Of a stretch of 64,000 nt of DNA, positions 21,384-59,341 are shown piece by piece. Each line of letters opens with the position of its first letter. The first letter of the stretch is position 1. Made by a program: the position numbers and the translations under genes. Where the stretch lies: the NCBI GenBank assembly GCA_950097015.1, contig CATNEN010000030.1, forward strand, positions 2,046,001 to 2,110,000, in the 5' to 3' direction. Under the pieces are notes generated by a model that saw only the letters and a program-made list of their open reading frames with translations, was not told the origin of the DNA and ran no database searches. Source of the stretch: Macrostomum hystrix. Taxonomy: Eukaryota; Animalia; Platyhelminthes.

Positions 21384-23285
21384 ATGGACAGGGTGAGTTA
21401 GTAACTGAAGCCACGTTTGCACCTACGCTCGTATCTTTGATTCAGAGCCCCGAGGTACCTGATTGAGATCATTTACACGAAACTTCAGACTCGAAGCACA
21501 GGAAAAGTCTGCATTCATGGGCTCAAGCAAATCCTGCACGAAGACGATGTCGATTCTCTGGTCATCCAGCTGGAGCTGGCCAAGCCCCTCGCCCTGTCGC
21601 AGATCCTGCAGCTCAGCATCGAGCAGCTCACTGACGGTGGCAGCATTGCGGACTGCATCAAGTGCGGCAGGTCCGACTTCACTTCGTTCCTCATCGCTCA
21701 CTCCACTGTGCTGGAAGTTGCCGCATGCACACTCGCTCTCAACTGTGTCACTCACCTGATCGGTGAGCTGGAGGCTGCAGCCGACTCGGCTGATGCACTT
21801 CATCAAGCAGTCGGGCAGCAGTCAGACAGCGGCGAGTCGGTGGTGCCGCTGCACTGTCTCATTGTGAAGCTGTTTACTCTGAGAGGCGATGCTGCATTTG
21901 AGCACAGGGCGGTGAGATTTGTGCGCAAACTGTCGGTCGAGCAGCCTCAGTTCTTCCGCGTGTGCGCAGAGAAGGAGGCGTTCGGCTACAATGCTCTCGA
22001 GCTGGCAGTCAGTCTGCAGCTGTTCTCACTCGCTGAGTGCATTCTCGAGTCGAGCAAGTACTGCGGAGAGGTCAGTCTCGTAGCAGGCGTGAAGGTGCAG
22101 CGAGTTGATCTGAGCGAGTACGACTTCGCCACGGGTGAAAGGTACGACAAGAGCCCGCTGAACATGCTGGCCTTCATGGCCATCAAGGAGCTGTTAGGGC
22201 CGGTGAAACAGTTTATGGATCATAAAATTATAAAAGAGTGGTCGCGCAGAATTTTGTGCTACATTCGGAGATCAATGCTCATCCGAGCAGTGATTTGCAC
22301 AGTTTACAAGACAATCATTCTTCTGTTTGCTCCTGGAAACATCTACAGCACAATCACTGTGAAAAGATTCGAACTGCTAGGCAACTCTAGTTGGACATGT
22401 CCTCTGTTTAACATTCATTCTCGGTGGCATTCTGTTTGTTCGCTGACGACTGTTCAAATATCAATGAGTCTGTCAATATCAGCGTTCACCGTCGAGTGCC
22501 TCGTGTTTTTATTAGCAAATCTTGCATTGGCACCAACTCTCGGCGCCTACAAGTCATACTTCGACGCCATCAGTAGCTTCATGCAGACGAAAAGCCAGAC
22601 ATTGATTCGAGTCACAATTCTGCTGCTTTCATTCGTTATGTTGTTTTTCTCAATAATAGTTGCTTCCGATCCGGCATCGCTGGTCCCTCAAACTGAGTCG
22701 CGCCCACTTCTGCTGGTAATCCTGGACTACACCACCTGTGTAATCTACATTCTTTCAGCACTCACCTTGGTCTTTGACTGGATGTTGGTCATAGAGAAAA
22801 TGGTCCTACTCTGGGATTCGGTTGAGATTTTCTCCTTCTTCATCGTCATCATTCTCCTGGTGATGTCTCTGTTCTGCTGGCTCGTATCGCTGATCGTGCC
22901 TTGCGATCCAGTTTTCGACCCCAGAATGGAATCGGAGATTTCCTACACAGTCTTGACCTTCTATCTGCTGTTGAACAACGGAGGCCTGTCCAGAGACTCG
23001 GTGCGAACCCTGGGCGCGGTGTTCCTGGTGACTCACGCTCTCATCGTCCTGTTCTGCTTCAACTTCCTGATCGCTCTGCTGTCCCAGCGCCTATCGGTGG
23101 CTTCGGACAACCTGCGACACATCAGCACTGCCCATCGGCTGCACTCGTACCACTTTATCCGGATGGGCTGCAGGAAGGTACGAAAGGCGCTTCGAGTTGA
23201 GTGGCCCCGCCCTGCTCCTAGCCAACAAGACTCTGTGGCTGGCTCTGACAGCCTCTGCAGATTCGGCCTGTTTGTGGAGACCTAG
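21384..23285 (+). CDS. TRP(V)-like 6-TM cation channel, copy 1; probable micro-exon 21384-21392 (MDR) plus a large exon from ~21489
   Basis: The frame is open from 21441 to TAG at 23285. Features: a degenerate ankyrin-type motif (EKEAFGYNALELAV), a TRPV-like linker (VDLSEYDF..KSPL), six hydrophobic segments, pore helix YTVLTFYLLLNNGG and S6 HALIVLFCFNFLIALLSQRLS (compare TRPV6 LLMLNLLIAMM). ATG GAC AGG|GTGAGT pairs in phase 0 with CTTCAG| at 21488. Confidence 0.8.
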
Positions 23286-23599
23286 AGCCTATTCGGAAGG
23301 TACAACGAAGCCGCTGTGACTTTCAGCTTATTGATTTAGAGCGCAATACTGTCGGCGACATCGAGAGACCCCCAACCGAGCATCCGTGACGGTCTGTTGT
23401 AAAGCGTTTTTTAACCCATCCTGGGCATCCCATCAGCTTGGTAAATTATAATTTTAATGATTATCGAAGTTTAAGTGGATTTTTGCTACCATTTTTGGCG
23501 ATTCGCTACTGAAGCAACTTCTATTACGAGTAATAATGCCTTCTATTTTACTGCTAAACCGACAGTAAAATATAAATTTGCACAATCACAGAAAAAACA

Positions 23600-23790
23600 C
23601 CTAACCCAGTGTGTCAGGTAAATAGCCAGTGGCGCAAGGACGCAGCCATTCTACCCCAGTTAATTCTGGTACCATTTTTACAGTTCTTTTTAACTGAGAC
23701 AATTGGGAATTATTGCTCAAAAAGAGGTTGTTAAATTTTTTGAGCTGAGATTCGAACTCGCAACCTCTTGGTTGCGAATCCCTCATATGG
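23600..23790 (-). mobile_element. Degenerate copy of the tRNA-SINE family seen at 17330
   Basis: Minus-strand B-box GTTCGAATC, plus GGTACCATTTTTACAG matching GGTACCAATTTAACAG of the 17.5-kb copy. Confidence 0.6.
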
Positions 23791-23829
23791 AGATTCCTAA
23801 TAAAATAATCTGCGAAGAGGACCAATCTC

Positions 23830-24772
23830 TAAATCGCATGGATGTGTCAAAATCGAAGAGACTGCTGAATTTGTGTAATGCAACGGTTTTTATGTAATTG
23901 TATGGGTTTAGCGTAATGCTAAAAGTTAAGTGCTGTGGCTGGCAAGCCAGCGAGGTCTTGTTGAGTCGATGTAGCTGCTTATTGAGTCTGGAGCTCCTGC
24001 ATTTCCGTCTGCTCACGGCGGCTGCGATGCGGCAGTGACAAAGCTTCTAGAGGCAGCGGCGAATCTGGATCTTCGTCGTCAGAATGGATCGACGCCGCTA
24101 TTGATTGCAACGCAGGCTGGACACGTGGGGATAATTTGGCAACTTCTGTGGATCTTCTCCAGTGCTCATTGCTGCTTAGTATACGAGATTGCCGTCTATT
24201 GACTGCAAATCGATTTGCTCTCATGCTAGCCGCTGCTAACTTAGTTTGCTGTGAGCAACAAAAGCGAATTGCAGGAGCACCATTGCTGGAGTTATCTCAC
24301 AGGAACCTAGTCAGGCACTTTTTCATCACGAGAGAGAACTCGAGCTAATTTGATCAGTTTCAAGGCCACAGCGATCGCTTCCATGCAAAGCTGGTCACCA
24401 TGGAGATGGCGGGTAGCGTGCTAGCTGACCTATGGAGAGCAGGCGATTATTAGGATTTCAATCCCGAATGATCGCAATAAATTTGGTGCCAAGAGCTCAG
24501 AAGCAAACAAGGCCAAGAAGTTACAGCTGGCTAAGGCTGCAAATCAAATATTCTAGCTGCAGTACATGCGCAAATATTGAATCTATCGAGCCCTCAAAAC
24601 TAAAGCCTGCAGTAAATGCTCTGACCAAACTCTTTTTATACTATCAACGCTAACTAACACTGGCCAGAAGGAGCACTGCGTTGAAGCTAAAAAAATGGAA
24701 AGTTGCGTATCACATTGTCGATCCTCGCAAGCACTTCCGGGAAAAACATCATCAAAGAACCCAGCCATGCAC
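23830..24772 (+). pseudogene. Relic of the ankyrin exon of the ANK-cGLR gene
   Basis: Fragments LWLASQRGLVESM*LLIESGA and AVTKLLEAAANLDLRRQNGSTPLLIATQAGHVGIIWQLL align with VWLASKRGHVMAMEPLMKAGA and AVAKLLEYGASPDIRRQDGSTALLIAAQTGHASVVRCLL of the 30141-31339 exon. The relic has stops and frameshifts. Confidence 0.8.
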
Positions 24773-26691
24773 GTGAGTGGGCTTTCCGGCACTTTCTCCG
24801 TAAAATGTATGCGGCTAGCGTATTACCATCCTTATAATAATAATCGATTCATAACCGTGAACTGAAATTACAGAAATCCGCATCTATATCAGTGATGCCC
24901 GAGCTGAAGCGCATCCTTCACGAAGACGATGTCGATTCTCTGGTCATCCAGCTGGAGCTGGCCAAGCCCCTCGCCCTGTCGCAGATCCTAGCTGCAGCTC
25001 AGCATCGAGCAGCTCAGCATTGCGGACTGCATCAAGTGCGGCAGGTCCGACTTTACTTCGTTCCTCATCGCTCACTCCACTGTGCTGGAAGTTGCCGCAT
25101 GCACACTCGCTCTCAACTGTGTCACTCACCTGATCGGTGAGCTGGAGGCTGCAGCCGACTCGGCTGATGCACTTCATCAAGCAGTCGGGCAGCAGTCAGA
25201 CAGTGGCGAGTCGGTGGTGCCGCTGCACTGTCTCATTGTGAAGCTGTTTACTCTGAGAGGCGATGCTGCATTTGAGCACAGGGCGGTGAGATTTGTGCGC
25301 AAACTGTCGGTCGAGCAGCCTCAGTTCTTCCGCGTGTGCGCAGAGAAGGAGGCGTTCGGCTACAATGCTCTCGAGCTGGCAGTCAGTCTGCAGCTGTTCT
25401 CACTCGCTGAGTGCATTCTCGAGTCGAGCAAGTACTGCGGAGAGGTCAGTCTCGTAGCAGGCGTGAAGGTGCAGCGAGTTGATCTGAGCGAGTACGACTT
25501 CGCCACGGGTGAAAGGTACGCGAAGAGTCCGCTGAGCATGCTTGCGGAGATGGCAGTGCGAGATCTATCTGAGCCGGTGAAGATGTTCATGGACCACGAC
25601 ATTGTATCACGCTGGTCAAAGAGAGTTAGCTCGATGCACTTTTCTATGGCCATCAGGGCTGTTCTCTGCTCAAGTTATAAGCTTTTCATTCTCGCATTTG
25701 ACCCAACCTGCATCTACTCATCAGTGACAGTGCAGAAGTTCAGCACACTCGGTAATTTTACTGAGTGTTCGCTTTATCCACTGCACCATCACTGGAACAA
25801 AGATTGTCTGTCGCGTGCGTTTAGAGTGGCACTGATCAGCTTTATGTTCTTATACATGCTGGAATGCGTCATCATTGCACTCTTGAACATAATTTATGCA
25901 TCGGCAGTCCGACGATCAGGTACTTCAGTGCTAATGGCCTGTGCCAAGCATATCCGGTACAACAGACAGGCGGTGATGAATGAATAATCCCAACCCTGTG
26001 CTGCATCATGCTGATGTACTACGGCTCTAGAGCCTATAACGACACGGCTTCGCTTGCCGGCTCCATTCTTGATCGCGACTTCCAGCTGAGAGTCCTGGAC
26101 TATTCAAACAGCCTTGTCTACATTCTCACCATCATGACTGGATGCTGGTCATCGATAAGATGGCACTACTGTGGAATGTATTCGGCGTGTTTCTGTTCTT
26201 TGTGCTCATAATATTTATTGTGATGTGCCTGTTTGGCTGGTTGATTGCTCTGATAGTGCCGTGCGAGCCTAGCTTTGACTCGAGCATCAACTCAAGCATT
26301 CTCTCAACGGGCCCCCCTGCTTTCATTTTAACTGCTAATTAACAACGGCGGCCTCTCCAAAGATTCGATGCACTCTCTAGGCTTAGTGTTTCTGGTGACT
26401 CTCGCGCTAATCGTGCTTTTCTGCTTCAATTTTCTCATTGCCCAGCTTTCTGAACGGTTGTCCAATGCGTCACAAAATCTTAGACACGTCTGTCTGAGCT
26501 TTGAGCTGTACGTTGGCTACATCGCTGCCCTCCCGGCAGCGGTTCTGCAGAGGGCCTTTCAAAAGCGACTTGGCAACCGGCTGCGGCTTTTGCCGGCCTC
26601 TATTAAACTGGATTATCTGCACAGAATTGTAGAGCTGAATTCTTTCAAAACTGTCAAGACTTTTTTGAAGCAGACAAAGCAGTATATATAG
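24767..26691 (+). pseudogene. TRP(V)-like channel, copy 2, pseudogene
   Basis: It has the same N-terminal cassette as copy 1, but with a 4-nt insertion (~24989) and a 12-nt deletion (~25016). Further frameshifts occur near 25980, 26145 and 26335. Pore and S6 motifs (NNGGLSKDS, LIVLFCFNFLIAQLSERLS) are still visible. Probable micro-exon ATG CAC|GTGAGT with a phase-0 acceptor at 24873. Confidence 0.85.
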
Positions 26692-27614: not shown

Positions 27615-30600
27615 CTAGGTGTGTACAGTTGGCGGCAGTTCTCGCATTCGGCCGCTGCGACGTCGTCTTCGGCGACATTTTTCAGTTGCGCCGCCGTTGG
27701 CCGCCTCTAGGCGCAGCTGGTGAGCCACGCCTAATAAGGTTCGTCGCATGCAGCTCTCGCGCAGGTCCGGCTGAAATCATGGATTAATGACGAAACAGCC
27801 TGCTTACACTTTCCAAAGGAGTACACTTACCGTTCCGACAAGGTGGTCCGAAGGTAAGGGACAGGACAGGATGATTGTCGTCGCGGAAATGGTATTCCTT
27901 TATTTATTTGTCTTTTTGCTTGCGACAGTCACTGTCCGTCCTCTTTTTGCCGTTCCCTTCATTCTCTAGCCCCCTGTTGTCTGCCTGCCCCCACCCACGC
28001 ATTCAATTATCGATTTTCCGACCCCCGTCGCGCTAACCCCTTCAGTCTGGCCCCAATCTGTCCAATCTCTCTCCCCCGACTATTTATCGATCGTTATTAT
28101 CGATCGTAGTAAAAGGTAGTGTAGTTTTTTTCCCCCTAGTCTGAACTTATTGGGTACACAATTTTTATAGGACGGGCCTCTTGCGTATAGATTTTGGGAG
28201 GAACTAAATGCACTCACCAGTCTTAACATGCCGTCGCTAAGCTTTGATTGTAGCGATGGCACGCTCGCGATGATGTCACTGTTGCGGTGGACGATGCTGG
28301 CTATAGTGTCCGCGTCGGGGCAGAACTGCAGAGCTAAAAGGATGTCGGAAACGTCGGCTTCCCGTTCGTGCTGCGTCGCCTCGAACCAGCGTCGCGACTC
28401 GTACTGGACCTCCGTCGGAATGAGCTCCAGACAGAGGCACTTGAGCAGGGCGCTGAAGTTCATGTAGAACCTGTTGCCGTAGAACTGCATGGCCAGCGGA
28501 AAATGTTCCCTGGAGAAGCGAGGAAGGAACTTCAGGTCGGGACGCCTGTCGTAGCGGAAGCAGAAGCGCCAGATCGAGTCACTCTCCGACAGCTGCCGAA
28601 AGACGTCCTCAGCGACCTCCATCGGCTCGGTCAGCTGCCGTTTGACGAGTCCTTTGCTGACCTGGTGATGAGCCACTGCTCTGAGTGTCCGCAGCGCAGC
28701 ATCTCGCTGACCGATCTTCAACTGGGTCATCGCTCTGAAGCTCTCTCGGACAGAGAGGGCGAAGTCAGGAATGCTGTCAATTACTGACATTTGCGGGTGC
28801 GAGTCAGTCGCTAAGTCTCGAAACAGATTCCACAAGACTGGATAGATACCGGTTAAGCTTATTTCGCTTTTGGCTGAGTGCACATCATATGTCACAGGTA
28901 CCAAGGTAAAAGGGTGAAACTGCAGGAAGCTGGAGTCGCTGATCGGTACCAGCTGTTCCATGAGTTTCATCAGAGGCTGCCTGCAGGTCGTTCATAGTGC
29001 TCCTCACCGCCTCCATGACGTCGCTCTTTGTCGAGTGGCCGCTGCGCAGATACACGGCGGCTCCGGGTGCGAAGAAGTGTCGCAGGCACTCGTGCTCTCC
29101 GCCCTGCTGCAGGCCGTCGAGCAGAATCTGCAGAGCTCGCCTGGTCAGCTGCAGCAGATTGTCGGCTCGCCAATCACTCGCCGGAGTCTCGTCCACCATG
29201 CGGAACAAGAGAGTCTTGGCCACGTAGGTCTTGAGTCCGCTCACGGTGTTGGAGAGGTGTCGCTTGATGAGGAACTTCAGGATGACGAACAGCTGGCCCT
29301 GCTCTGTGTTGAATCCTCGGATCATCCGCCTCTCCAAGAAGGTCGTGCTCAGCCGGAGCCACTCGCCCTCTTTGCCGGGAGGCGCCGCTCGGACCAGGTG
29401 GCACAATGATTGCTCGCGCTCGAATCTCAGTTGTTTAAGCAGCTCAGGAGGAATGTGGGTAGGTCGTCCGTGCGCAAGGACTTCAACATCCGGATAGCAG
29501 CAGGTGCGCAGTGCGTTCACGTAGTCCATGGCCGGCGACTGCAGCGTCCCAAACTGAGGATTGCTGGGATTGGCCGCTGGAATGCGGTGAAAAATTCAGA
29601 TAATTAATCATTAAAAAACTGAGTTTAGATTCTCATCTGCTCTCAAAAAACCGAACGAATTGCGCTTGAATTAGTTTTTGCATATATTCTCTTGGCTTAC
29701 TTGCAACAGGATAGGGAACGTAGCCGTGTTCGTACTTGACGACCTTCTCTTGATCAGGAGCCTCGCACTCGCAGCGTCCTTCGATATGCAGCACGACAGT
29801 GAGGATCTCGGTAAAGTCTATGTCAGAGTCTTTGTCAATCTGACCATTCAGGAACCTCAGTGAGCTACCCCAACCTTCACTGAAGCTTCCCACAACATTA
29901 ATGTTTGTCCCAGGTCTCAGTCCGCGAACTATGTCCTGGAGAATGTCTGCCTCGGCCTGCTGTACGAGCGCGCTTTCTCTATTGAAACCGGATCGGCTGA
30001 GGGCCTGGAAAAGCTCCGTGCTGAACTGGCCATCGGACGTGATGGTTCTGAGGTGGATTGACAATGAAAAATGCCCTGATAAACATAAAACTTTATATTC
30101 AGTCAATAAGTGGACTATCTTTTAACAAATACGATCGTACCTATTGGACTGAGCAGTCGACGTGAACTTTGTTTTCCCTGCCGTCGCACTGCGGGTGAAT
30201 CGGCGAAGGCACTCGGCAGCCAGACTGGCACACGATTTCGGAACGGTGCGCTGTAGAACTTCGGCATCCACATGAAGGCTCCTAAGTAAGCGAAGAGCAT
30301 TGTTTCCTAGACCATAGCAACATGCGGCAACGATAGCAGCTTCGATGTGACCCATGTGAGGCGAACTTGCGCCAAGAAGAAGGTCAACAGCTTCCGTGTC
30401 TGTGCAGTGACTGGCGGCTAGTGAAACAGGTAGTTCATCAGCCTTGTTCTCTAAGTTAGCATCTGCCCCAGACTCAAGCAGCGTCTTTATCACATTGGTG
30501 TGACCCTTCTTGGCGGCCCTGTGCAATGACGAGTCTCCATTGGCATCCTGAGAATTTACTGACGCACCGGACCTTACAAGTTGCTTGACGACCTCATTGT

Positions 30601-31339
30601 TTCCGTTTTCAGCCGCTGTGTGAAGTGGCGATGAACGTACATTGTCCAGAGCATTGACGTGGGCACCGGCCTCGATCAGGAAGGTCACCAACTCTAAATA
30701 GCCCTTTTGAGAGGCCTTGTGCAACGGAGTCCACTTGGAGTTCGTCTTCTGGTTTACGTCGGCTCCAGCCTCCAACAGATGACGAATGACTGCAATGTGA
30801 TTCCACCAGCAGGCTGCAAAAACAGCGGCAGAGCCAAATATGTTGGCCTGGTGCGGATCGGCACCGGCTTCAAGCAGCAGTTCCACCACTCTCTGCTGGC
30901 CGTACTGAGCCGCCATGAGCAACGGTGAGGAGCCATCGTTTCTCTGGAGATTGGCATCGGCTCCAGCGTCTAGCAGACAACGAACAACGCTGGCATGACC
31001 AGTTTGAGCGGCAATGAGTAGTGCCGTCGATCCATCCTGACGCCGGATATCTGGACTGGCGCCGTACTCGAGCAGCTTTGCCACAGCTGGATCGCAGCCG
31101 CCCTGAGCAGCTGCAAATAGAGGAGTCGCTCCGTCGAACTCAGCGCAATCCAGCTGAGCACCAGCTTTCATCAGAGGCTCCATTGCCATTACATGACCCC
31201 GCTTACTCGCCAGCCAAACAGGCATGTGACCAGACGAGTCACGGGCGTCCGGGTCAACACCCGACTTCAGCAGCGACTCGGCCGCAACTCTGTTGCCGCT
31301 GCTGCATGCGACATGTATGTTCAGTGCCGATTCAGCCAT
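27615..31339 (-). CDS. Ankyrin-repeat / cGAS-like receptor (cGLR, Mab-21 nucleotidyltransferase) fusion, ~1019 aa after correcting one +1 frameshift at ~28980; exons 30141-31339, 29701-30047, 28218-29576, 27615-27770
   Basis: About 10 ankyrin repeats join through a phase-2 93-nt intron (AG|GTACGA...CTCAG|A) to the NTase core VVGSFSEG..DSDIDF. A phase-1 intron leads to MDYVNAL..CYP, and the Mab-21 helical region follows (EWLRLSTTFLERRMI, LKTYVAKTLLF, DW..DNLL, CLRHFF). The last exon is inferred from splice signals only. Confidence 0.8.
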
Positions 31340-32167: not shown

Positions 32168-32346
32168 CATATTCAACCAATCCACATTCAACCAATCCGC
32201 ATTCAACCAATCCACATTCAACCAATCCGCATTCAACCAATCCACATTCAACCAATCCACATTCAACCAATCCACATTCAACCAATCCGCATTCAACCAA
32301 TCCACATTCAACCAATCCACATTCAACCAATCCGCATTCAACCAAT
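32168..32346. repeat. 15-bp minisatellite (ATTCAACCAATCCRC)n, ~12 copies, just downstream of TRP copy 3
   Basis: Visible period-15 array. Confidence 0.95.
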
Positions 32347-36755: not shown

Positions 36756-37734
36756 CAATGATCAGTTGACAATGATCCCCCAGTTGATAAAGATCCCCCA
36801 GTTGACAATAATCCCCCAGTTGACAATGATCCCCCAGTTGACAATGATCCCCCCGTTGACAATAATCCCCCAATTGATGATGATCACGCAGTTGATTATG
36901 ATCCCCCAGTTGACAATAATCCCTCAATTGATGATGATCACGCAGTTGACAATGATCCCCCAGTTAATGATGACTCCCCATTGATGATGATCCCCAGTTG
37001 ACAATGTTCCCACAGCTGACAATGATCCCCGAGTTGACAATAATCCCCCAATTGATGATGATCACGCAGTTGACAATGATCCCCCAGTTAATGATGACTC
37101 CCCATTGATGATAATCTCCAGTTGACAACGTTCCCCCAGTTGACAATGTTCCCACAGTTGACAATGATCCCCCAGTTGATGATGATCAACAAGTTGACAA
37201 TGATCCCCCCAGTTCACAATGATCCTCCGGGTGATGATAAACCCCCAGTTGACAATGATCCCCAGTTGACAATGATCCCCCAGTTGACATTGACAATGAT
37301 CTCCCAGTTGACAATGATCCCCCAGTTGACAATTATCCCCCAGTTAACCATGATCCCGCATTTGATGATGACTCCCCAGTTGACAATTATCCCCCAGTTG
37401 ACAATTATCCCCCCGTTGACAATGATCCTCCAGTTGACCATGATCCCCCAGTTGACGATTATCCCCCACTCGACAATTATCTCTCAGTTGACTATGATCC
37501 CCCATTGATGGTGATCCCAGTTGACAATGTTCCCCCAGTTGAACATGATCCCCTAGTTGACAATGATCCCCTAGTTGATTATGATCCCGCATTTGGTGAT
37601 GTTTCCCCGTGACAATTATCCCCCAGTTGACAATTATCCCCCAGTTGCCAATGATCCTCCAGTTGACAATGATCCCCCAGTTGACAATTATCCCCCAGTT
37701 TACCATGATCCCCCAGTTGACGATTATCCACCAG
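36756..37734. repeat. Imperfect 18-bp minisatellite (CAGTTGACAATGATCCCC)n inside the Helitron
   Basis: Visible ~18-nt periodicity with many variants. Confidence 0.93.
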
Positions 37735-37735
37735 T

Positions 37736-38736
37736 TCTGGTTTAGCAATGATTCAAACGCTGGGTTAGCCATGATTCAAACTCTGGTTTAGCCATGATTC
37801 AAACTCTGGTTTAGCCATGATTCAGAATCTAGTTTAGCCATGATTCAGACGCTGGTTTAGCTATGATTCAAACTCTGGTTTAGCCATGATTCAGACGCTG
37901 GTTTAGCTATGATTTAAACTCTGGTTTAGCAATGATTCAAACGCTGGGTTAGCCATGATTCAAACTCTGGTTTAGCCATGATTCAGAATCTAGTTTAGCC
38001 ATGATTCAGACGCTGGTTTAGCTATGATTCAAACTCTGGTTTAGCCATGATTCAGACGCTGGTTTAGCTATGATTCAAACTCTGGTTTAGCCATGATTCA
38101 GACTCTGGTTTAGCCATGATTCTGACTCTGGTTTAGCCATGATTCAGACTCTGGTTTAGCTATGATTCAGACTCTGGTTTAGCTATGATTCAGACTCTGG
38201 TGTAGCCATGATTCAGACTCTGGTTTAGCCATGATTCAGACTCTGGTGTAGCCATGATTCTGACTCTGGTTTAGCCATGATTCAGACTCTGGTTTAGCCA
38301 TGATTCTGACTCTGGTTTAGCCATGATTCTGACTCTGGTTTAGCCATGATTCAGACTCTGGTTTAGCTATGATTCAGACTCTGGTGTAGCCATGATTCAG
38401 ACTCTGGTTTAGCGATGATTCAGACTCTGGTTTAGCCATGATTCAGACTCTGGTGTAGCCATGATTCAGACTCTGGTTTAGCCATGATCCAGACTCTGGT
38501 TTAGCCTTGATTCAGACTCTGGTTTAGCCATGATTCAGACTCTGGTTTAGCCATGATTCAGACTCTGGTTTAGCCATGATTCAGACTCTGGTTTAGCCAT
38601 GATTCAGACTCTGGTTTAGCCATGATTCAGACTCTGGTTTAGCCATGATTCAGACTCTGGTTTAGCCATGATTCAGACTCTGGTTTAGCCATGATTCAGA
38701 CTCTGGTTTAGCCATGATTCAAACTCTGTTTTAGCC
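37736..38736. repeat. 23-bp minisatellite (GACTCTGGTTTAGCCATGATTCA)n, ~43 copies, inside the Helitron
   Basis: Visible period-23 array that becomes more homogeneous towards the right. Confidence 0.96.
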
Positions 38737-39582
38737 GGTGTGCTATGATTTATGATATTTTATTTACGAAATGAAAAAAATAAATTAAAAAAATCTTCAA
38801 TCACTACTGGCTGAAAATTAGTCTAAATGATTTGACGCAGTGCAGAATCGAACCCTAGCCTAGCCTAACCTATTCCTAGTGCCTACACATCGGCTATTCC
38901 GACTGTTGGTTAGTGGGTGCAAAAATCAGCCTTATAAAATGAATTCTCAAAGTTCTGGCTTTGTACAATGAAGTAAGAAAATAGAGTACACTCAGTCTCG
39001 CGGTTGGTTGTGTACATTTATTTCCCATTTGTCTCCAGAGTGCAGGCTTCAAATTCAATCAGCTAGGGGTTGTTGCGCAATTTGACGATGCAATTCTAAT
39101 TCAGCGGCAGTGAGTAAAATTCTCAATAGGCCAAGATGGTTTGACCTTTGAAAAATCATGTTTTTCGAATATTTAATCCCTTTAGCAATAAAGTTAAGCT
39201 TAATAAAAATACGTGTATAATTGTCCCCATATTTGGCATCTTTTGGTGAAGAAATGGTGAAAATCGGTTGAGCCGTTCGGGAGAAAATCAATTACAACCA
39301 ACCAACCAACCAACCAACCAACCAACCATTTCATTTTTAGTATAGTGGATCCTTGCCAATCCCACCTATACCAAGCTCAATTGAATACTATATCTACAAA
39401 GGATACTATTATCTTTTTTCTTCAGGTCACAGCTTGACTGATGCATTGTAAAGGCCAGCTTGTCACTGCGCTGTTAGCGATGTCGGTAAATCTGTCGTGC
39501 GAAGCCTTCGCTCATCTGTCCGCATGTAAGGAGCCTAAGGAGGCCAAGTAGCCCAAGGCTTTCGACATTTTATCCCTAGTCA

Positions 39583-42500
39583 ATGGCGAATAATAACGAC
39601 AGCGCCAACGATGATAGAAGCATCAGCCAGGAGTCGGTGCTCGCCTGGTTCAACGATCGCCTACAGCCTCATGAGCGCATTGAGCTGCTCTGCTCAATGC
39701 TGCTTCAACTGCGCCCCGCTGGAGCTCCGCTTCCTGGCTTCCTGGTCCGAGGCCGCCGCCGGCGCCGGCACCGGAGCTATGGAACTACGAGAGTTCGAAG
39801 CTAGAATCAACTCGCCAGCTGAGCTGCTTCGGCTGGCCGAGTCTGCCGAAGTTGCCGCCGCTAGCGACGCCGCGCTTTGCCGTCTAACTCTGGCCCTGGC
39901 TCTGGTTCGGCCAGACAATGCGGCCTGCGGCAGACTCTTGGCCGACTGGCTCGGACGTCTCGACCTTGAGCAACCCGACAGCCTCCGGCACGCCTGCCTG
40001 GTTGGCGCCCTGGCTGTGCGACAGCCGGCGCTGCCGTTCGCCTGTCGATTGCGCCTGCTGGCCTTGCAGCGTCGGCTGGCAGACCGGATGGCCGCCACTG
40101 CCGAGGTAAAAAATACTGCAAAAGTGCGCTTACGCTTTACTGTTAGTAGATGAATTCTCTGGTGGCCTTTTTAGTGCTTTGCTAGCTTCAAGTTGCAATC
40201 AATTGCTATGCTTTTGGTATCATTATCTGAGATTGATCTGTTTAATTGAGTAATTTAGAATTATTTGTATTATTAAAACTAACTAAAAATGCTAGGTGAT
40301 AATGAAATTAATTAAAAGGTCGTTAAAGTTCAATATTTTATTACTAATTATTCGCACGCTTAATTAAAAAAATAATTTCTTGCTTGAGAAGTTTGGCTAA
40401 ACAGAGTAAATACTCGTTTATTTATCATTATTATTATAATGAGGTTAAAAACGCCTAATCTGCTACTGATTGTCAGTAGCTTAGGCAACATTTTTTGGAA
40501 CAGAGTGTTTGAAGCTTATTTTCCCCGCTTAGGTCTCCAGATGCGACGGACAACCAGCGGAGCACTCGGAGACCGCCGACACTTCTCAGCGCCTGCGCTA
40601 CCACTCAGCCTCAGATGGCTGCCGAACAGGGCGAGCCTCGCCACAGACGACTCCCGCAGGCGCCAGCGGCGACAGGCTCCGCTGGTTGCACCGTCGGCTG
40701 TCCGACGCCACCGAGCTGGAGGCCGGAGCCCGACGTAGACCGCCGCCGTCCCATTTGGACAGCGGGCTGAAGAGGCGGACACCTGCGTCAGGTGAGTGGC
40801 GATATATTTTCTCTCCATTCGCTTTAGCCTTCTTCATTTTGGCTCCCTTCATTTTGGCTCCCTTCATTTTGGCTCCCTTCATTTTGGATCCCTTCATTTT
40901 GGCTCCCTTCATTTTGGATCCCTTCATTTTGGCTCCCTTCATTTTGGCTCCCTTCATTTTGGCTCCCTTCATTTTGGCTCCCTTCATTTTGGCTCCCTTC
41001 ATTTTGGCTCCATTTACGAGTCACATAATTCACTTTTAGCACTCGCTTTCAATCATTCAAATGTATCCCCAAGACTATTCTCAACTGCCATATTCGCATT
41101 CGCTATTGCACCTGCAATCCACAGGTGTATGCCTGAGGCATGCGGCGCTGGCCTCTCTGCCTACTCATCGGCCAGAAGATGCGGGCGCCTGCACAGCAAC
41201 TTTCGGACTGGACAACCCGTTCCGCATTCGTGTGAGACACTGGGCAATGAACTTTTATTTGCAATTCAGTGCCATTTTCCATATTTAGGTACCGATTTCC
41301 AAATCTATGTGAAATTTTCTAATATTTTATGGAATTTTGTATCGAAGGGCCGTTACCATATAAAAACGCCATTTTCGTACTGATGTGCCATTTCCGTATT
41401 TAAGCGCCATTACATGTCGAAGTGCCAATTTCGTATAGAAGTGCCATTTCCGAATTGAAGTGCCATTTTCGTATAGAAGTGCCATTTCCGAATTGAAGTG
41501 CCATTTCCGAATTGAAGTGCCATTTCCGAATTGAAGTGCCATTTTCGTATAGAAGTGCCATTTCCGAATTTAAGTGCCATTTCCGAATTGAAGTGCCATT
41601 TCCGAATTGAAGTGCCATTTCCGAATTGAAGTGCCATTTCCTAATTGAAGTGCCATTTCCGAATTGAAGTGCCATTTTCGTATAGAAGTGCCATTTCCGA
41701 ATTGAAGTGCCATTTCCGAATTGAAGTGCCATTTCCGAATTGAAGTACCATTTCCGAATTGAAGTACCATTTCCGAATTGAAGTGCCATTTCCAAATTGA
41801 AGTACCATTATTCGTGTAGAAGTGCCATTTTCGTATAGAAGCGCCATTTCTGAATTGAAGTGCCATTTCCGAATTGAAGTGCCATTTCCGAATTGAAGTA
41901 CCATTTCCGAATTGAAGTGCCATTTCCGAATTGAAGTACCATTATTCGTGTAGAAGTGCCATTTTCGTATAGTAGTGCCATTTCCGAATTGAAGTGCCAT
42001 TTCCGAATTGAAGTACCATTTCCGAATTGAAGTACCATTTCCGAATTGAAGTACCATTTCCGAATTGAAGTGCCATTTCCAAATTGAAGTACCATTATTC
42101 GTGTAGAAGTGCCATTTTCGTATAGAAGCGCCATTTCCGAATTGAAGTGCCATTTCCGAATTGAAGTGCCATTTCCGAATTGAAGTACCATTTCCGAATT
42201 GAAGTGCCATTTCCGAATTGAAGTGCCATTTCCGAATTGAAGTACCATTTCCGAATTGAAGTGCCATTTCCGAATTGAAGTGCCATTTTCGTATAGAAGT
42301 GCCATTTCCGAATTGAAGTGCCATTTCCGAATTGAAGTGCCATTTCCGAATTGAAGTGCCATTTCCGAATTGAAGTACCATTTCCGAATTGAAGTGCCGT
42401 TTCCGAATTGAAGTACCATTATTCGTTTAAAATCAAAGACAGTCAAAAATTTCATTTTTTAAGATTTCACCCTTCAGCTAGCAATTTAAAACAGTACTTA

Positions 42501-45500
42501 CATATGTTGTTTTAATCGAATTCTGAAAATAGGATTTTAATCTGCTTACATGCTGGGGAATACAGCCATTTCGGTCTCCTGAAGCCACAGTGCAGACCCA
42601 AGCCTGGCAGGGCTCTTTTCCATGGGATTAAATTACCTGGTTTTACCTGGCAGGCAACCGGATTAACTAGCACGGGTGGGCACAGCCTCCCATAAAAAGC
42701 ACTGGCGCCCCCCCTTGTCAGCCAGCTCCCCACGGCCAGACCTCCGGGCAATGCTCTGTTGCACTTTATCTGCATTTCCAGGTCGCCATGTGGCCCAGCG
42801 GCGCGACCAGCTCCGAGATCGTCAGGTGCCTGTCGGACCTGCTGGCGCTCTACTTGAAGGTGGCTGCTCTGGACTTGATCTTTACTATTCTCTCCGAGCT
42901 TCCGTTTTTTATAGTTCTGCTAGTGGGTTTTGCGTGCCGACTGATGTGAGTGTCGTGCGTGCGGTCAGGCCGGCTCGGCAAAAAACATTTCCGCTTCTTG
43001 TCTGCCGCTCCCCTGAAAAGCTTACCTCTGCCTCTGCCTCACACTCTCCTGCCTCCTAGACTGCCTCACTCTCTCTGCCTCACACTCTCCTGCCTCCTAG
43101 ACTGCCTCACTATCTCTGCCTCACACTCTCCTGCCTCCTAGACTGCCTCACTATCTCTGCCTCACACTCTCCTGCCTCCTAGACTGCCTCACTATCTCTG
43201 CCTCACACTCTCCTGCCTCCTAGACTGCCTCACTATCTCTGCCTCACACTCTCCTGCCTCCTAGACTGCCTCACTATCTCTGCCTCACACTCTCCTGCCT
43301 CCTAGACTGCCTCACTATCTCTGCCTCACACTCTCCTGCCTCCTAGACTGCCTCACTATCTCTGCCTCACACTCTCCTGCCTCCTAGACTGCCTCACTAT
43401 CTCTGCCTCACACTCTCCTGCCTCCTAGACTGCCTCACTCTCTCTGCCTCACACTCTCCTGCCTCCTAGACTGCCTCACTCTCTCTGCCTCACACTCTCC
43501 TGCCTCCTAGACTGCCTCACTCTCTCTGCCTCACACTCTCCTGCCTCCTAGACTGCCTCACTATCTCTGCCTCACACTCTTCATGTCACACTCTGCCCCA
43601 CACTCTTCATGTCGCACTCTGCCCCACACTCTTCATGTCGCACTCTGCCCCACACTCTTCATGTCACACTCTGCCCCACACTCTTCATGTCGCACTCTGC
43701 CCCACACTCTTCATGTCACACTCTGCCCCACACTCTTCATGTCGCACTCTGCCCCACACTCTTCATGTCACACTCTGCCCCACACTCTTCATGTCACACT
43801 CTGCCCCACACTCTTCATGTCGCACTCTGCCCCACACTCTTCATGTCACACTCTGCCCCACACTCTTCATGTCGCACTCTGCCCCACACTCTTCATGTCA
43901 CACTCTGCCCCACACTCTTCATGTCACACTCTGCCCCACACTCTTCATGTCACACTCTGCCCCACACTCTTCATGTCGCACTCTGCCCCACACTCTTCAT
44001 GTCGCACTCTGCCCCACACTCTTCATGTCACACTCTGCCCCACACTCTGCCCCACACTCTTCATGTCACACTCTGCCCCACACTCTTCATGTCGCACTCT
44101 GCCCCACACTCTTCATGTCACACTCTGCCCCACACTCTTCATGTCACACTCTGCCCCACACTCTTCATGTCGCACTCTGCCCCACACTCTTCATGTCACA
44201 CTCTGCCCCACACTCTGCCCCACACTCTTCATGTCACACTCTGCCCCACACTCTTCATGTCGCACTCTGCCCCACACTCTTCATGTCACACTCTGCCCCA
44301 CACTCTTCATGTCACACTCTGCCCCACACTCTTCATGTCGCACTCTGCCCCACACTCTTCATGTCGCACTCTGCCCCACACTCTTCATGTCACACTCTGC
44401 CCCACACTCTGCCCCACACTCTTCATGTCACACTCTGCCCCACACTCTGCCCCACACTCTTCATGTCACAGTGTTTTCTCGTACTACTCAAACGTTTGGT
44501 GTACTTGCTTATCAGTTACTCTGCTGAAACCGGGGTACTGCCCACCTGACTACCTTTCGAGTTAAATCTAAGTTACTCGTAGCTTATTAAATTTCGCAAT
44601 TGTTCCACTGACAGTCGAGTTATTTTATAGTAAAAAGAACCTATGAAACAAATGGAATAGAGATGAAATTGAATTGAGCAGAGATGGGCTGTTGTGACAA
44701 CAAAAGTAGGAATAGCCACCTCTCACACATCTGAGCAGGCCAAAAGCCCGTCTGTCGGTGTCTCCTTTGAGCCGCATAAGTTGAGCATTCTTTTCTCAAG
44801 CCGGCGAGTGACAGACAGGCATAGCTAGCCAATTCTTGTGGTTTGTTGGCTTTCAATTATAATAGCATTTTCTCAGCTGCCATCTTCTCACCCTTCATAG
44901 TCATAATATATTTGCCATCTATCTACCTTACTGTCTTCTCAAAACTGTCTTGTTGTGCGCCCGCCGAGTGGGTGATTTATGACGCGGCTGGCACGCTTCT
45001 AAAAACTATCAGATCTTATATAGTGGATGCTGTTGTGTGATTTCATTTAAGAATTAGCAACCGATGTTCTATCAAGCTTGCGTTTAGACGCTCACGAGCT
45101 TCGCTATCTAAACTTGTACTTTTGTATAGATAAAGCACAATAGTTGCTTGCATATTTTCTGTTGCTTTTTTAAGCGAAAACCTGCAGGCTCTATTGGCAA
45201 AACTGAATGGGCGTGCACCACTGTCCTGTCTGGCATTGCTTTGTGCGTTCACTGATAAAGCAAAAATTCCATTTGCCTTGATAATTCACTTTTTCTTTAG
45301 TTCACAACCCAGAGCTGTACTATGAACGTAGTGGAGCATTACTGACTATTATCCCAAAATATGATTCCTTACTGACTAATCTCTGCTTACATTTGGCAGA
45401 TTCAGCCAATGCTTCAACGACAGTCAGCCATCGTTCCTCTGCTGGACGACCTGCTCGCGAAACGAGGCTGCACAACAACTGAGCTGACCGCTCAGGCTGC

Positions 45501-48500
45501 CACTGAAGCTGTTCAGTCACTGCTGCGGTGGGTACCGGCCCTGCTGTGTCTGGTCTGTCTAGTCTAGCGGCATTGTACAGACCCTTCCCTGTCTAGTCTA
45601 GCGGCATTGTACAGACCCATCCCTGTCTAGTCTAGCGGCATTGTACAGACCCATCCCTGTCTAGTCTAGCGGCATTGTACAGACCCTTCCATGTCTAGTC
45701 TAGCGGCATTGTACAGACCCATCCCTGTCTAGTCTAGCGGCATTGTACAGACCCATCCCTGTCTAGTCTAGCGGCATTGTACAGACCCTTCCCTGTCTAG
45801 TCTAGCGGCATTGTACAGACCCATCCCTGTCTAGTCTAGCGGCATTGTACAGACCCTTCCCTGTCTAGTCTAGCGGCATTGTACAGACCCTTCCCTGTCT
45901 AGTCTAGCGGCATTGTACAGACCCTTCCCTGTCTAGTCTAGCGGCATTGTACAGACCCTTCCCTGTCTAGTCTAGCGGCATTGTACAGACCCATCCCTGT
46001 CTAGTCTAGCGGCATTGTACAGACCTATCCCTGTCTAGTCTAGCGCATTGTACAGACCCATCCCTGTCTAGTCTAGCGGCATTGTACAGACCCTTCCCTG
46101 TCTAGTCTAGCGGCATTGTACAGACCCTTCCCTGTCTAGTCTAGCGGCATTGTACAGACCCTTCCCTGTCTAGTCTAGCGGCATTGTACAGACCCTTCCC
46201 TGTCTAGTCTAGCGGCATTGTACAGACCCTTCCCTGTCTAGTCTAGCGGCATTGTACAGACCCATCCCTGTCTAGTCTAGCGGCATTGTACAGACCCTTC
46301 CCTGTCTAGTCTAGCGGCATTGTACAGACCCATCCCTGTCTAGTCTAGCGGCATTGTACAGACCCATCCCTGTCTAGTCTAGCGGCATTGTACAGACCCT
46401 TCCCTGTCTAGTCTAGCGGCATTGTACAGACCCTTCCCTGTCTAGTCTAGCGGCATTGTACAGACCCTTCCCTGTCTAGTCTAGCGGCATTGTACAGACC
46501 CTTCCCTGTCTAGTCTAGCGGCATTGTACAGACCCATCCCTGTCTAGTCTAGCGGCATTGTACAGACCCTTCCCTGTCTAGTCTAGCGGCATTGTACAGA
46601 CCCATCCCTGTCTAGTCTAGCGGCATTGTACAGACCCTTCCCTGTCTAGTCTAGCGGCATTGTACAGACCCATCCCTGTCTAGTCTAGCGGCATTGTACA
46701 GACCCTTCCCTGTCTAGTCTAGCGGCATTGTACAGACCCTTCCCTGTCTAGTCTAGCGGCATTGTACAGACCCTTCCCTGTCTAGTCTAGCGGCATTGTA
46801 CAGACCCTTCCCTGTCTAGTCTAGCGGCATTGTACAGACCCTTCCCTGTCTAGTCTAGCGGCATTGTACAGACCCTTCCCTGTCTAGTCTAGCGGCATTG
46901 TACAGACCCTTCCCTGTCTAGTCTAGCGGCATTGTACAGACCCTTCCCTGTCTAGTCTAGCGGCATTGTACAGACCCATCCCTGTCTAGTCTAGCGGCAT
47001 TGTACAGACCTATCCCTGTCTAGTCTAGCGGCATTGTACAGACCCATCCCTGTCTAGTCTAGCGGCATTGTACAGACCCTTCCCTGTCTAGTCTAGCGGC
47101 ATTGTACAGACCCTTCCCTGTCTAGTCTAGCGGCATTGTACAGACCCATCCCTGTCTAGTCTAGCGGCATTGTACAGACCCTTCCCTGTCTAGTCTAGCG
47201 GCATTGTACAGACCCTTCCCTGTCTAGTCTAGCGGCATTGTACAGACCCATCCCTGTCTAGTCTAGCGGCATTGTACAGACCCATCCCTGTCTAGTCTAG
47301 CGGCATTGTACAGACCCATCCCTGTCTAGTCTAGCGGCATTGTACAGACCCTTCCCTGTCTAGTCTAGCGGCATTGTACAGACCCTTCCCTGTCTAGTCT
47401 AGCGGCATTGTACAGACCCTTCCCTGTCTAGTCTAGCGGCATTGTACAGACCCTTCCCTGTCTAGTCTAGCGGCATTGTACAGACCCTTCCCTGTCTAGT
47501 CTAGCGGCATTGTACAGACCCTTCCCTGTCTAGTCTAGCGGCATTGTACAGACCCTTCCCTGTCTAGTCTAGCGGCATTGTACAGACCCTTCCCTGTCTA
47601 GTCTAGCGGCATTGTACAGACCCTTCCCTGTCTAGTCTAGCGGCATTGTACAGACCCTTCCCTGTCTAGTCTAGCGGCATTGTACAGACCCTTCCCTGTC
47701 TAGTCTAGCGGCATTGTACAGACCCGAGCTTCATATATAGAGCAATTCAAATGAAAGTGGTAGCTGCACATCTATTTAAACAACATTTTTGTCGGTCAAC
47801 TAAACTCAAATAATTTCATTCTTGGTTCTTACCTGTTAGTTTTGAATGGGCAAATGAAAGGTAAAAGGAAGTAAAGAACAAAAATATTTATCCAAGGCAC
47901 GAGCGAGAAGAAGAGCTTGTCAAGAAAAAAACTGAAAAACGAAATGTAAAAGAGATTCCGAGGTCAATTTGCTCAATTTTCGTTTTTCTCTCTTTGATAA
48001 TCAGCATCATCAAAGTCAAACTGTCGGCCTCTAGCTGCTGCTGCTGCTGAAAAGTGTTCAGCTGCAGGAATGACGGTAGAAGGCGCAGAGTAAATATTGG
48101 GGGTCACAAAATGCGGCAGTTGTGCGTGTGTGTGTAGGCGGGTGGCTACACCATCCTGAGACTGTGTGCTCATGTGTGCTCATGTGTGCTCATGTGTAGG
48201 CCAAGATATTGAGTAGCTGGTCTGGCTGAAATGACCTGCCTTATTTCGAGTTGAATTGAATTACCAGCCCAGAAACGCATCAAGAGAGAGTCCAATTGTT
48301 TTCTGTCTGCTCACTCTACCTCTGCGCCAGCACTACAATACTTGTAAAGGCTGCAGCAGCTGCGGCTGTCAATATTGAGCCGTGGCGCCGCTGCCTCCAC
48401 CCCCTCCCTACAGGAGCCCCGAGGTAAACAGGTAGTTTTTAGAGCGCACAATAATAATAGGTAGCTCCGAACTCCGAATTAACCGAGCTGTCACCGGGTG

Positions 48501-51500: not shown

Positions 51501-51584
51501 CAGCACCGTATGCTGGGCCCGCTGCCGCTGCCACCTCCGCTCCAGCTCCAGCACCCACACCAGCTTCATCCTCAGCATCATCTT

Positions 51585-51630
<46 letters not shown>

Positions 51631-52636: not shown

Positions 52637-52672
<36 letters not shown>

Positions 52673-53968: not shown

Positions 53969-54009
53969 AGGGAGCAGTCATGCGAATTCGCAAAATGTAG
54001 CCTGTCTCT

Positions 54010-54220
54010 TGTGGTGAGTGGGAGAGCGATTAACGCATTTGCCTTTCGCACCAAGGCCCCTGAACTCGATTCCGCAATCGAGAGAGAGAAGGCTTAGGGG
54101 CTTGTCGTGCAATTTACGCCCTTGAGGGCCAACCTCCATGGCACAGTGAAAATATACTGCCTGACGATGAGAAAGTCAGGGCTGATGTACACACCTGTGT
54201 GAGTGTGTGCGTGTGTGCTC
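54010..54220 (+). mobile_element. Second SINE family, copy B
   Basis: Aligns by eye with the reverse complement of 19680-19880; degenerate B-box GAACTCGATTCC. Confidence 0.45.
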
Positions 54221-56477: not shown

Positions 56478-56510
56478 AGTCCATGGACACTGATTCGACG
56501 CCACATCCAT
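56478..56510 (-). mobile_element. Short fragment of the SINE at 17330
   Basis: GCTGTTCAGTCCATGGAC..GACGCCACATCCA matches 17441-17477. Confidence 0.55.
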
Positions 56511-57201
56511 TCGAATTTCTACCTCGTCTGACGTTGGCCGCAAAACAATGCATTGATTATTCCGAAAGTTGTCATGGGAGAGGTTAATCTAGATAAGAGC
56601 AAACTAAAAGTCACGCCCAAACGTTTTAAACAAACGAGCAGCAAGAATACAAAAATATAGTAACAGGCAAAGCAGATGTACATTAGCGCCAGTACTTTAT
56701 GTAGGAATGCAGCGCGCTGCTTTTTCGCCTGAGTACCGAACAGTTGGCCGTCTTTGCACAGTGCATTCGTCGTGGCTCGATATCAACAAGACGGTAACAG
56801 AGAACTTGTTCCACGTTCTAGTGCCTTCGCACAATAAATTCGAGATGGGCAGCAATGCCATGTCCACCCACGAATGCTTGCGAATAAGACAGAGATCGAG
56901 CAACTAAAGTAAAAGTGCAAACCTGATTGACAGCTCGCGATGAAGGCCACATAGCCGAGACGAGCTCATGCTCAGTTTTTTGGCGCTAATTACTTCCCAA
57001 CTCACCCTCCGATCATCTTTCTAATGGGCTGACAACGGGACTCAGCCAGCGCAAATCTTAAGGGAGGAGGCTTTAAATGAATGCACTTTTATCCCGAAAT
57101 ATTGAGTCGGCTAACTGGCTCAAACACGCTCTAAATAAGCCGCAACCTCAAAAAGTTTAGGATTAATTTTAAAGCGCTATCAATGAAAACATATACTTGA
57201 T

Positions 57202-57290
57202 TCGGTGGTGCCGCTGCACTGTCTCATTGTGATGCTGCTCCCTCGGAGAGGCGATGCGGCATTTGAGAGCAGGGCGGTGAGCAGCCTCAG
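57202..57290 (+). pseudogene. Diverged, deleted relic of the TRP N-terminal cassette
   Basis: TCGGTGGTGCCGCTGCACTGTCTCATTGTGATGCTGCTCCCTCGGAGAGGCGATGCGGCATTTGAGAGCAGGGCGGTGA aligns with the cassette (VVPLHCLIV..RGDAAFE.RAV) with several substitutions and a deletion. Confidence 0.75.
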
Positions 57291-57514
57291 CACGTATTGA
57301 TGAAAGCACAATATCAAATACAGGCTTATCAGTAATGAAAACCCGCAAAGTATCGGTATTGTACAATACGAGCTAATAGCCTTGAAGGCCGCCAGATTTT
57401 CATTATTTATGACTTAAAAGATTATACTTCTACTACTGAAGAATTAGTACTAAATATATTCAGTGATAGTCTGCAAAGATTGAAAAAAACGAATTTGGAG
57501 AGAAAAAATTATCA

Positions 57515-59341
57515 TCAGTTATCATTTTCAATCAGTCGGTAGACATAGCGACAGTCAGGTAAGATTTTCCGCAAAAGCAGACTGTCCAAGCAACTCGCCT
57601 GACGGGATTTCACAGCGCTTCCTCGGCGCAGGCGGATGATGCAGGCGGGCAGGGACAGGGCCAGGAAGCGCATGTGCAGCCGATAGGCTAGGCAGATGTA
57701 CCGGCAGTTGCTAGCCGCCGCGGACAGCCGCTCGGACAGCAGGGCTACGAGAAAGTTAAAGCAGAACAGAACAATTAGGGCGTGCATCACAACATAGGTG
57801 GCGCCCAAGGCTTGCACGGAGTCGCGGGACAGGCCGCCATTGTTAACCAGCAGGTAGAAATTGATGAGGCCCTGTGAGAACATGTCGCTGTTAGCCCCGG
57901 GGTCGAAGTTCGGCTCGCAGGGCACGATCAAGGAGATCAGCCAGCAGAACAGAGTGATCACGCTGATGATGATGGTCAAGAAGAAAGCGAATGTGCTCAT
58001 CACATTCCACAGCAGGGCGATGCTCTCCAGGACCATCATCCAGTGGGACACAATGGTCAGAATGGTGAGGATGTACATCAGGCTCGAGCTATAGTCCAGC
58101 AGCCTCAAGTAGACATCGCGCTGCGTAATCGGCAGCGTCATTGACTCGGCATGATCTGCCGCGCCGAGAGCCAGCACGAACATAGCTACTATGTTGAGTA
58201 GTATGCCAAGCATCAAGAACATATCGCTGTTGCTGATGGCGTGGCTAAGGATGGCCCTGACTCGTGTTCCTGAGCGCCTTGCCTTGCATGCGAATATGCA
58301 GTTAGTCAAGAGGGCCGTGCAGCATTCGACCACGTAGCACAGAAGCAAAAAGTACAACATGATTTGCGAGGGCAGCGATTTGCAAATTGCGTTCAAACGA
58401 ATGTGAAATAAAAGCAGCGCACAGCTGCTGGTGTTTGTAGGGCTACTGCTTATGCGAGCAATGGACACTTGCGAGTAAATGCAAGCCGACCCAATAGACA
58501 GGAGAAAAACCTTGCATGCGGAGGAAAGCACTGCTCGTAAAAGAAAGAAATTTTGCAAGGAGCTCATGACTAAATGTGACCAAAGGACTATAATGTGATG
58601 GTCCATGAACCTTTTGACAGGATCCGAAATGTCCGAAATAGCAGACTTGGCTAAAATGCTCAGCGGACTCTTCGCGTACCTTTCACCTGTGGCGAAGTCG
58701 TACTCGCTCAGATCAACTCGCTGCACCTTCACGCCTGCTACGAGACTGACCTCTCCGCAGTACTTGCTCGACTCGAGAATGCACTCAGCGAGTGAGAACA
58801 GCTGCAGACTGACTGCCAGCTCGAGAGCATTGTAGCCGAACGCCTCCTTCTCTGCGCACACGCGGAAGAACTGAGGCTGCTCGACCGACAGTTTGCGCAC
58901 AAATCTCACCGCCCTGTGCTCAAATGCAGCATCGCCTCTCAGAGTAAACAGCTTCACAATGAGACAGTGCAGCGGCACCACCGACTCGCCGCTGTCTGAC
59001 TGCTGCCCGACTGCTTCATGAAGTGCATCAGCCGAGTCGGCTGCAGCCTCCAGCTCACCGATCAGGTGAGTGACACAGTTGAGAGCGAGTGTGCATGCGG
59101 CAACTTCCAGCACAGTGGAGTGAGCGATGAGGAACGAGGTGAAGTCGGACCTGCCGCACTTGATGCAGTCCGCAATGCTGCCACCGTCAGTGAGCTGCTC
59201 GATGCTGAGCTGCAGGATCTGCGACAGGGCGAGGGGCTTAGCCAGCTCCAGCTGGATGATCAGAGAATCAACATCGTCTTCGTGAAGGATGCGCTTCAGC
59301 TCAGAAAAATGTGCGATTTTCGTAGCCCTCTTCCTAGCCAA
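57515..59341 (-). CDS. TRP(V)-like 6-TM channel, copy 4, intact ORF; first coding exon unresolved
   Basis: 608-codon ORF with the shared N-cassette, pore SQGLINFYLLVNNGG and S6 HALIVLFCFNFLVALLSERLS. The ORF-track start is TTG next to a CTAAC..TAG acceptor at 59334, so an upstream micro-exon is likely (for example ATG CTC GA|GTATAC at 59395-59402). Confidence 0.83.
   Translation of the reverse strand: MARKRATKIAHFSELKRILHEDDVDSLIIQLELAKPLALSQILQLSIEQLTDGGSIADCIKCGRSDFTSFLIAHSTVLEVAACTLALNCVTHLIGELEAAADSADALHEAVGQQSDSGESVVPLHCLIVKLFTLRGDAAFEHRAVRFVRKLSVEQPQFFRVCAEKEAFGYNALELAVSLQLFSLAECILESSKYCGEVSLVAGVKVQRVDLSEYDFATGERYAKSPLSILAKSAISDISDPVKRFMDHHIIVLWSHLVMSSLQNFFLLRAVLSSACKVFLLSIGSACIYSQVSIARISSSPTNTSSCALLLFHIRLNAICKSLPSQIMLYFLLLCYVVECCTALLTNCIFACKARRSGTRVRAILSHAISNSDMFLMLGILLNIVAMFVLALGAADHAESMTLPITQRDVYLRLLDYSSSLMYILTILTIVSHWMMVLESIALLWNVMSTFAFFLTIIISVITLFCWLISLIVPCEPNFDPGANSDMFSQGLINFYLLVNNGGLSRDSVQALGATYVVMHALIVLFCFNFLVALLSERLSAAASNCRYICLAYRLHMRFLALSLPACIIRLRRGSAVKSRQASCLDSLLLRKILPDCRYVYRLIENDN

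Follow-up and report, generated by a model that had tools for sequence, protein, structure and literature searches.

Interlocus gene conversion as the probable cause of a near-identical N-terminal block in divergent, probably TRP-like channel genes of Macrostomum hystrix

A block shared by divergent genes

Our analysis concerns a stretch of 64,000 nucleotides of the flatworm Macrostomum hystrix (assembly GCA_950097015.1, contig CATNEN010000030.1, positions 2,046,001 to 2,110,000 of the forward strand), which we call the window and whose own coordinates are used throughout. It holds a cluster, 38 kb in span, of genes that probably encode TRP-like channels and that share an almost identical N-terminal block beside membrane regions diverged to synonymous saturation. 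There are four copies of the block, c1 and c2 on the plus strand and c3 and c4 on the minus strand (Table 1). Interlocus (non-allelic) gene conversion is the best explanation for this identity, and we hold it to be highly probable.

The four block copies, of about 650-720 bp, were recovered in a repeat search as the inverted pairs I1-I4, and self-BLAST traced them over 21521-22244 (c1, plus), 24901-25606 (c2, plus), 34093-33370 (c3, minus) and 59303-58589 (c4, minus). When all four copies are aligned, their sequences upstream of the block show no relationship; near-identity sets in at the first codons, give or take a few bases, and persists for ~620 bp. On the 3' side, after 22173, nucleotide identity drops to 51-55% within ~40 nt. 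The block of c1 is 99.4% identical to that of c3 and 97.5% to that of c4. In the 596-bp core (21537-22132), pairs of copies differ by 2-7 substitutions, which corresponds to a divergence of 0.3-1.2% (98.8-99.7% identity), and every substitution is private to one copy (none in c1, two in c2, two in c3, five in c4). The longest identical stretches span 220-328 bp, against a maximum of 33-42 bp in 2000 column shuffles. A preliminary description of the locus, made by eye, had counted about 4 differences between c1 and c3 and about 10 between c1 and c4, counts that are exact over 21531-22160, and had reported an abrupt fall to ~40% amino-acid identity past the block, where we find 39-40%, compared with 208-211 of 213 residues within it. 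The block is the sole dispersed high-identity repeat in the window, and an Rfam search with it gave no match.

The contrast is sharpest at synonymous sites. For c1, c3 and c4, the copies that are intact, Nei-Gojobori counts gave proportions of synonymous (pS) and nonsynonymous (pN) differences of 0.032-0.051 and 0.004-0.014 in the block, and of 0.67-0.75 (saturated) and 0.40-0.42 in the rest of the gene. In windows of 40 codons, pS is zero across codons 60-200 and ~0.6 from codon 200 on. The preliminary description had argued that selection on the protein cannot by itself hold synonymous sites identical, and had named a uniform synonymous divergence along the gene as evidence to the contrary. 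The first point is borne out by the values above, and uniformity is not what we see, since pS jumps at the end of the block.

The reading frames of c1, c3 and c4 run uninterrupted through block and membrane region, which thus lie in a single exon, so that no intron boundary coincides with the block edge. The c2 copy has about six disabling lesions, two of them inside the block (Table 1) and the others downstream. The latter comprise a duplication of 4 nt near 25980, the loss of ~8 nt near 26135, a shift of frame close to a run of C at ~26310 and, near 26330, a TAA that falls within the pore-helix motif. Similarity in the 83-bp relic extends to about 57348 with an internal deletion, ~235 bp beyond the stop of c4; this relic is what is left of a family member since lost. 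Four dispersed paralogues had been described, and the four blocks in both orientations stand, but one belongs to a pseudogene, a relic lies beside them, and the depth of the reads suggests a further copy (see below). Likewise, the sequences upstream are indeed unrelated, as had been claimed of upstream introns and promoters, but no introns were shown there, and the ATG of c2 and c3 lies directly at the start of the block. For the two genes with no start codon of their own, candidate AG acceptors lie just before 21528 (c1) and just after 59299 (c4). The Macrostomum spliced leader probably has an ATG at its end (PMC10468722), and trans-splicing at these predicted acceptors would provide both genes with an in-frame start. 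A search of public assemblies for the exact sequence of c3 returned no record.

Table 1. Coordinates of the family members, their blocks and the associated relics in the window
Feature	Start	End	Strand	Description
c1 open reading frame	21522	23285	+	Intact; 587 codons plus stop; lacks an in-frame ATG, both at the block and upstream of it; six hydrophobic segments
c1 homogenised block	21521	22172	+	N-terminal 213-217 codons
Ankyrin-repeat relic	23933	24148	+	Downstream of c1; 49% amino-acid identity to the ankyrin gene at 30125-31339, downstream of c3
c2 pseudogene	24895	26691	+	Own ATG, MPELK start
c2 block	24903	25542	+	Frame broken by a 4-nt insertion and a 12-nt deletion
c3 coding sequence	32362	34101	-	579 codons, own ATG (MPELK) to stop, intact
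c3 homogenised block	33443	34093	-	Found by repeat search and self-BLAST; junctions match the loose ends of X1 contigs
Decayed block relic	57199	57281	+	83 bp; identity to the four blocks 88-90%; arranged tail-to-tail with c4
c4 open reading frame	57515	59299	-	Intact; 594 codons plus stop; lacks an in-frame ATG
c4 homogenised block	58650	59306	-	5 private core substitutions

Copies that differ in the genome might have been made to look identical by the assembly or by polishing with short reads, an outcome that the preliminary description had seen as fatal to its reading. The window probably derives from the Macrostomum assemblies of 2023, for which PacBio reads were assembled by canu before polishing by Arrow and Pilon (PMC10468722), and Pilon is able to homogenise repeats. 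We compared read-derived contigs of two public runs, X1 and X2, with the region 20700-24300. In X1 the block contigs have depths of 324 and 350, against 66-75 in the unique flanks (about 4.6-5x), and they join copy-specific flanks: their loose ends at the block edges are the 5' and 3' sequences of c3 itself and the flank of the relic, where a contig matches 57172-57201. Moreover, each copy has its own private variants and indels, and four c4-specific variants are found again in X2. The block is thus real and collapse is largely refuted, which makes an artefact extremely improbable.

The same runs tell more about the locus. X1 differs from the window by five fixed differences, at 21280, 21327, 22934, 23379 and 23412 (one 1-nt insertion and four substitutions), and is therefore not simply the assembly read back; these differences are either assembly errors or differences between strains. 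The depth of the block hints at about one additional copy beyond the window. X2 is labelled as another organism and reaches only 3x depth, yet it differs by only about 0.4-0.9%, little enough to suggest the same taxon or one very closely related to it.

Two peculiarities of the contigs concern c1. Between S5 and S6 (22834-23092), a 259-bp contig of X1 has about twice the depth of its flanks (128 against ~70), and one X1 contig joins 22179 to 22830. Together they suggest that a paralogue elsewhere, unseen here, is identical to c1 over a second patch; if this patch is real, conversion is perhaps not confined to the N-terminal block. In X2, the interval 21521-23622 is covered by a single contig of 2156 nt that starts with sequence upstream of c4 and the four variants private to c4, and continues with the block end and membrane region of c1, from which it differs at 6-8 positions in ~1450 nt. 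This contig is either a genuine recombinant copy or a de Bruijn chimera that passes through the 329 nt over which no copy differs from the others.

Exchange between copies and its alternatives

Since synonymous sites are beyond the reach of selection on the protein, and since the pseudogene c2 has kept the block, the identity must come from exchange of DNA, and in c2 it needs no selection at all. The 3' edge of the block carries the traces expected of overlapping conversion tracts. At site 22133 the copies fall into the pairs c1c2 and c3c4, at 22147-22162 into c1c3 and c2c4, and at 22166-22167 c1 is with c2 again, so that incompatible groupings with all four gametes are present. The reach of similarity also depends on the pair, extending to 22244 between c1 and c3 and to about 22165 between c1 and c4.

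These data fit a scenario in which the first ~640 bp of old paralogous single-exon genes would have been repeatedly overwritten between copies by interlocus gene conversion, while the pre-S1, membrane and C-terminal parts diverged to synonymous saturation. On the 5' side, tracts would be limited by the end of homology at the start of the coding sequence, as the flanks are unrelated. On the 3' side they may stop at a stable edge, beyond which 51-55% identity would be too low for the formation of heteroduplexes. This edge may have been set first by selection for differing membrane domains. The last homogenisation was recent, given the low divergence of the core. The relic shows the fate of a copy dropped from the exchange.

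A single recent event, by domain shuffling or template switching in repair, might instead have pasted one donor N-terminus into all copies, with no long-term concerted evolution. The core variants, star-like and each private to one copy, are what such an event would leave. Yet it would have had to reach four or five loci already ~50% diverged, which lack the homology that conversion needs, and to produce tract ends that are mosaic and unequal between pairs. Furthermore, a relic this decayed indicates that a block copy existed much earlier. Conversion requires prior similarity, and the remainder of the genes is ~52% identical; we infer that the block has stayed similar ever since the duplications, which favors long-term concerted evolution over one late shuffle. 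We thus regard the single event as very unlikely.

Several observations weigh against gene conversion as we propose it, or at least limit what can be said of its tempo. As all core variants are private, they cannot separate a single recent burst from continuing exchange. The comparison covers paralogues of one genome, whereas the classical proof has paralogues more alike within a species than orthologues are between species. A pairwise test for runs of agreeing sites, in the style of GENECONV, gave no information, since the block is common to all four copies. Finally, the signature of GC-biased conversion is weak, since GC content at third codon positions is barely higher in the block than outside (0.70-0.72 against 0.62-0.70). 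The preliminary description had spoken of ongoing conversion of one domain. Conversion of that domain remains the best explanation, but its ongoing character is unproven, as the private variants of the core reveal no exchange later than the last homogenisation and only the edges are mosaic.

Mobile elements also produce dispersed repeats, and we considered a transposon as the origin of the block. It is ruled out by the in-frame position in homologous genes, by the mosaic decay of the 3' edge and by the lack of other dispersed copies in the window.

The encoded proteins

The proteins form a lineage-specific and very divergent family of what are probably TRP-like six-transmembrane channels, a membership that is not established. 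Searches by sequence were blank. Pfam gave nothing relevant for whole proteins or pieces at E up to 10, including no match to Ank; an exhaustive phmmer search against 1.84 billion representatives gave 0 matches; word-indexed homologue searches, with one protein and with an alignment of the three sequences, found nothing; and profile searches of the PDB returned only chance matches to small membrane proteins. Other features point to channels. Hydropathy has six peaks in all three intact copies, and the ~40 residues between the fifth and sixth segments carry a conserved NNGG motif and form a putative pore loop. The neighbours of the whole protein in a protein language model are TRP clusters (0.96, 196 shared features). 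The membrane part taken alone falls near Ion_trans, YVC1_C and PKD (0.92-0.94, 182-201 shared features), and the block alone (residues 1-216) near Ank and TRP_2 (0.94, with only 146 shared features). The block probably encodes a cytoplasmic N-terminal domain, ankyrin-like by these model features.

Structure prediction adds little. The full-length AlphaFold model has a predicted local distance difference test (pLDDT) score of 45 and is unusable, and its Foldseek results against the PDB and Swiss-Prot are meaningless. A model restricted to the membrane part (pLDDT 60, predicted template modelling score 0.55) aligned in VIA with TRPV6 at Z 10.6-10.8 over 215-237 residues, from pre-S1 to S6, a match that carries the low confidence of the model. 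Cytochrome b561 scored higher, with a Z of 11.7, and chance values of this size are common among helical bundles. Foldseek found nothing significant for this model, the best TRP match being TRPV4 (E 0.47, probability 0.54), and an Atlas shape search returned unrelated bacterial proteins. The label TRP-like of the preliminary description is therefore plausible from the language-model features, the six segments and the weak fold match, but every sequence and profile search fails to back it.

If the block is a cytoplasmic domain, one may ask whether its identity is itself adaptive. N-terminal ankyrin domains contribute to the assembly of TRP channels. Selection might favor conversion if a cytoplasmic assembly domain kept identical allows subunits that differ in their sensor or pore to combine into mixed tetramers, as the preliminary description had imagined; this would be an addition to gene conversion, not a replacement for it. 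The 3' edge does fall near the junction between the cytoplasmic domain and the pre-S1 and membrane part. Divergence beyond it is uneven, highest in S1-S3 (pN 0.5-0.6) and lowest in S5-S6 (0.16-0.3), as would suit a diversified sensor on a shared cytoplasmic domain. Against this stand the pseudogene c2, whose block is no less faithful than those of the intact genes, and the missing start codons of c1 and c4. Neutral theory also predicts the same pattern once one part of a gene escapes conversion (PMC3924837, PMC3728101). We consider an adaptive role of the shared block unlikely, and the idea of heteromers to be speculation; the identity of the block does not show a special function of the shared part. 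Were it true, these genes would represent a constant/variable system of ion channels kept by exchange of DNA and not by splicing.

Surroundings and comparison with known systems

The cluster is flanked by a Piwi gene (14572-17022) and by TOP3A (61943-64000). Downstream of c3 comes an ankyrin-Mab21 gene, in which the ankyrin gene at 30125-31339 lies upstream of Mab21-like (cGLR-like) open reading frames at 28083-29529. An ankyrin relic follows c1 as an ankyrin gene follows c3, which indicates an old inverted duplication of a unit made of channel and ankyrin gene. Between c1 and its ankyrin relic, the X1 contigs break at 23740-23854, and their loose ends have no counterpart in the window; a dispersed repeat probably occupies this position. 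About 11 kb between c3 and c4 (36763-47725) are filled with back-to-back minisatellite arrays with units of 18, 23, 19, 41, 26 and 34 nt, the last in 64 copies at 98% identity, and C strongly exceeds G on the plus strand. Another minisatellite (15-nt unit, 11.7 copies, 32171-32346) begins ~16 bp past the stop of c3. Just downstream of the Piwi/PAZ exon (15610-17022), a weak tRNA match of 30.5 bits, just above the gathering score, lies at 17579-17648 on the minus strand.

The family resembles the TRP channels with N-terminal ankyrin repeats (TRPV, TRPA and TRPC) in its six hydrophobic segments, short S5-S6 loop and TRP neighbours in the language model. It differs from them by a short N-terminus (~215 residues) and by the lack of detectable similarity to any protein sequence. 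We are thus dealing with an orphan family, probably of TRP-like channels, with no detectable relatives in sequence.

The combination of one shared and one diversified part recalls the clustered protocadherins, where physical constant exons are shared through splicing. The present genes are arranged otherwise, with no physical constant region that splicing would share among a set of variable exons. Block and variable part are instead continuous in every gene, and the separate copies of the block are kept alike by exchange of DNA.

The closest parallels are cases of interlocus gene conversion, a process that is well described (PMC3924837, PMC3728101, PMC2720389, PMC7042247). They include theoretical work on conversion with diverged regions that escaped it (PMC3924837), GOT1 of Tigriopus (PMC3728101) and mammalian pairs of genes converted over more than 100 Myr (PMC2720389). 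As in these systems, a tract almost identical down to its synonymous sites lies beside strongly diverged sequence and has mosaic edges, and the process acts between direct and inverted neighbours. What sets the present locus apart is the extreme contrast (pS of 0.03-0.05 against saturation), the involvement of four or five copies and the coincidence with one whole domain of a channel protein. In the CEACAM family of receptors, too, some parts of the genes are converted while others escape, and selection is invoked for the latter (PMC7042247). The units differ, however: in CEACAM32 conversion affects the leader exon and introns, so that the units are exons (PMC7042247), whereas here the cytoplasmic domain is shared, the membrane core is variable and the edge falls inside an exon.

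Overall, the locus offers a very clean case of concerted evolution restricted to one domain, with four or five copies at ~99% identity directly beside synonymous saturation, and an edge within an exon. It adds one more clear example of a process already known and leaves current understanding unchanged.

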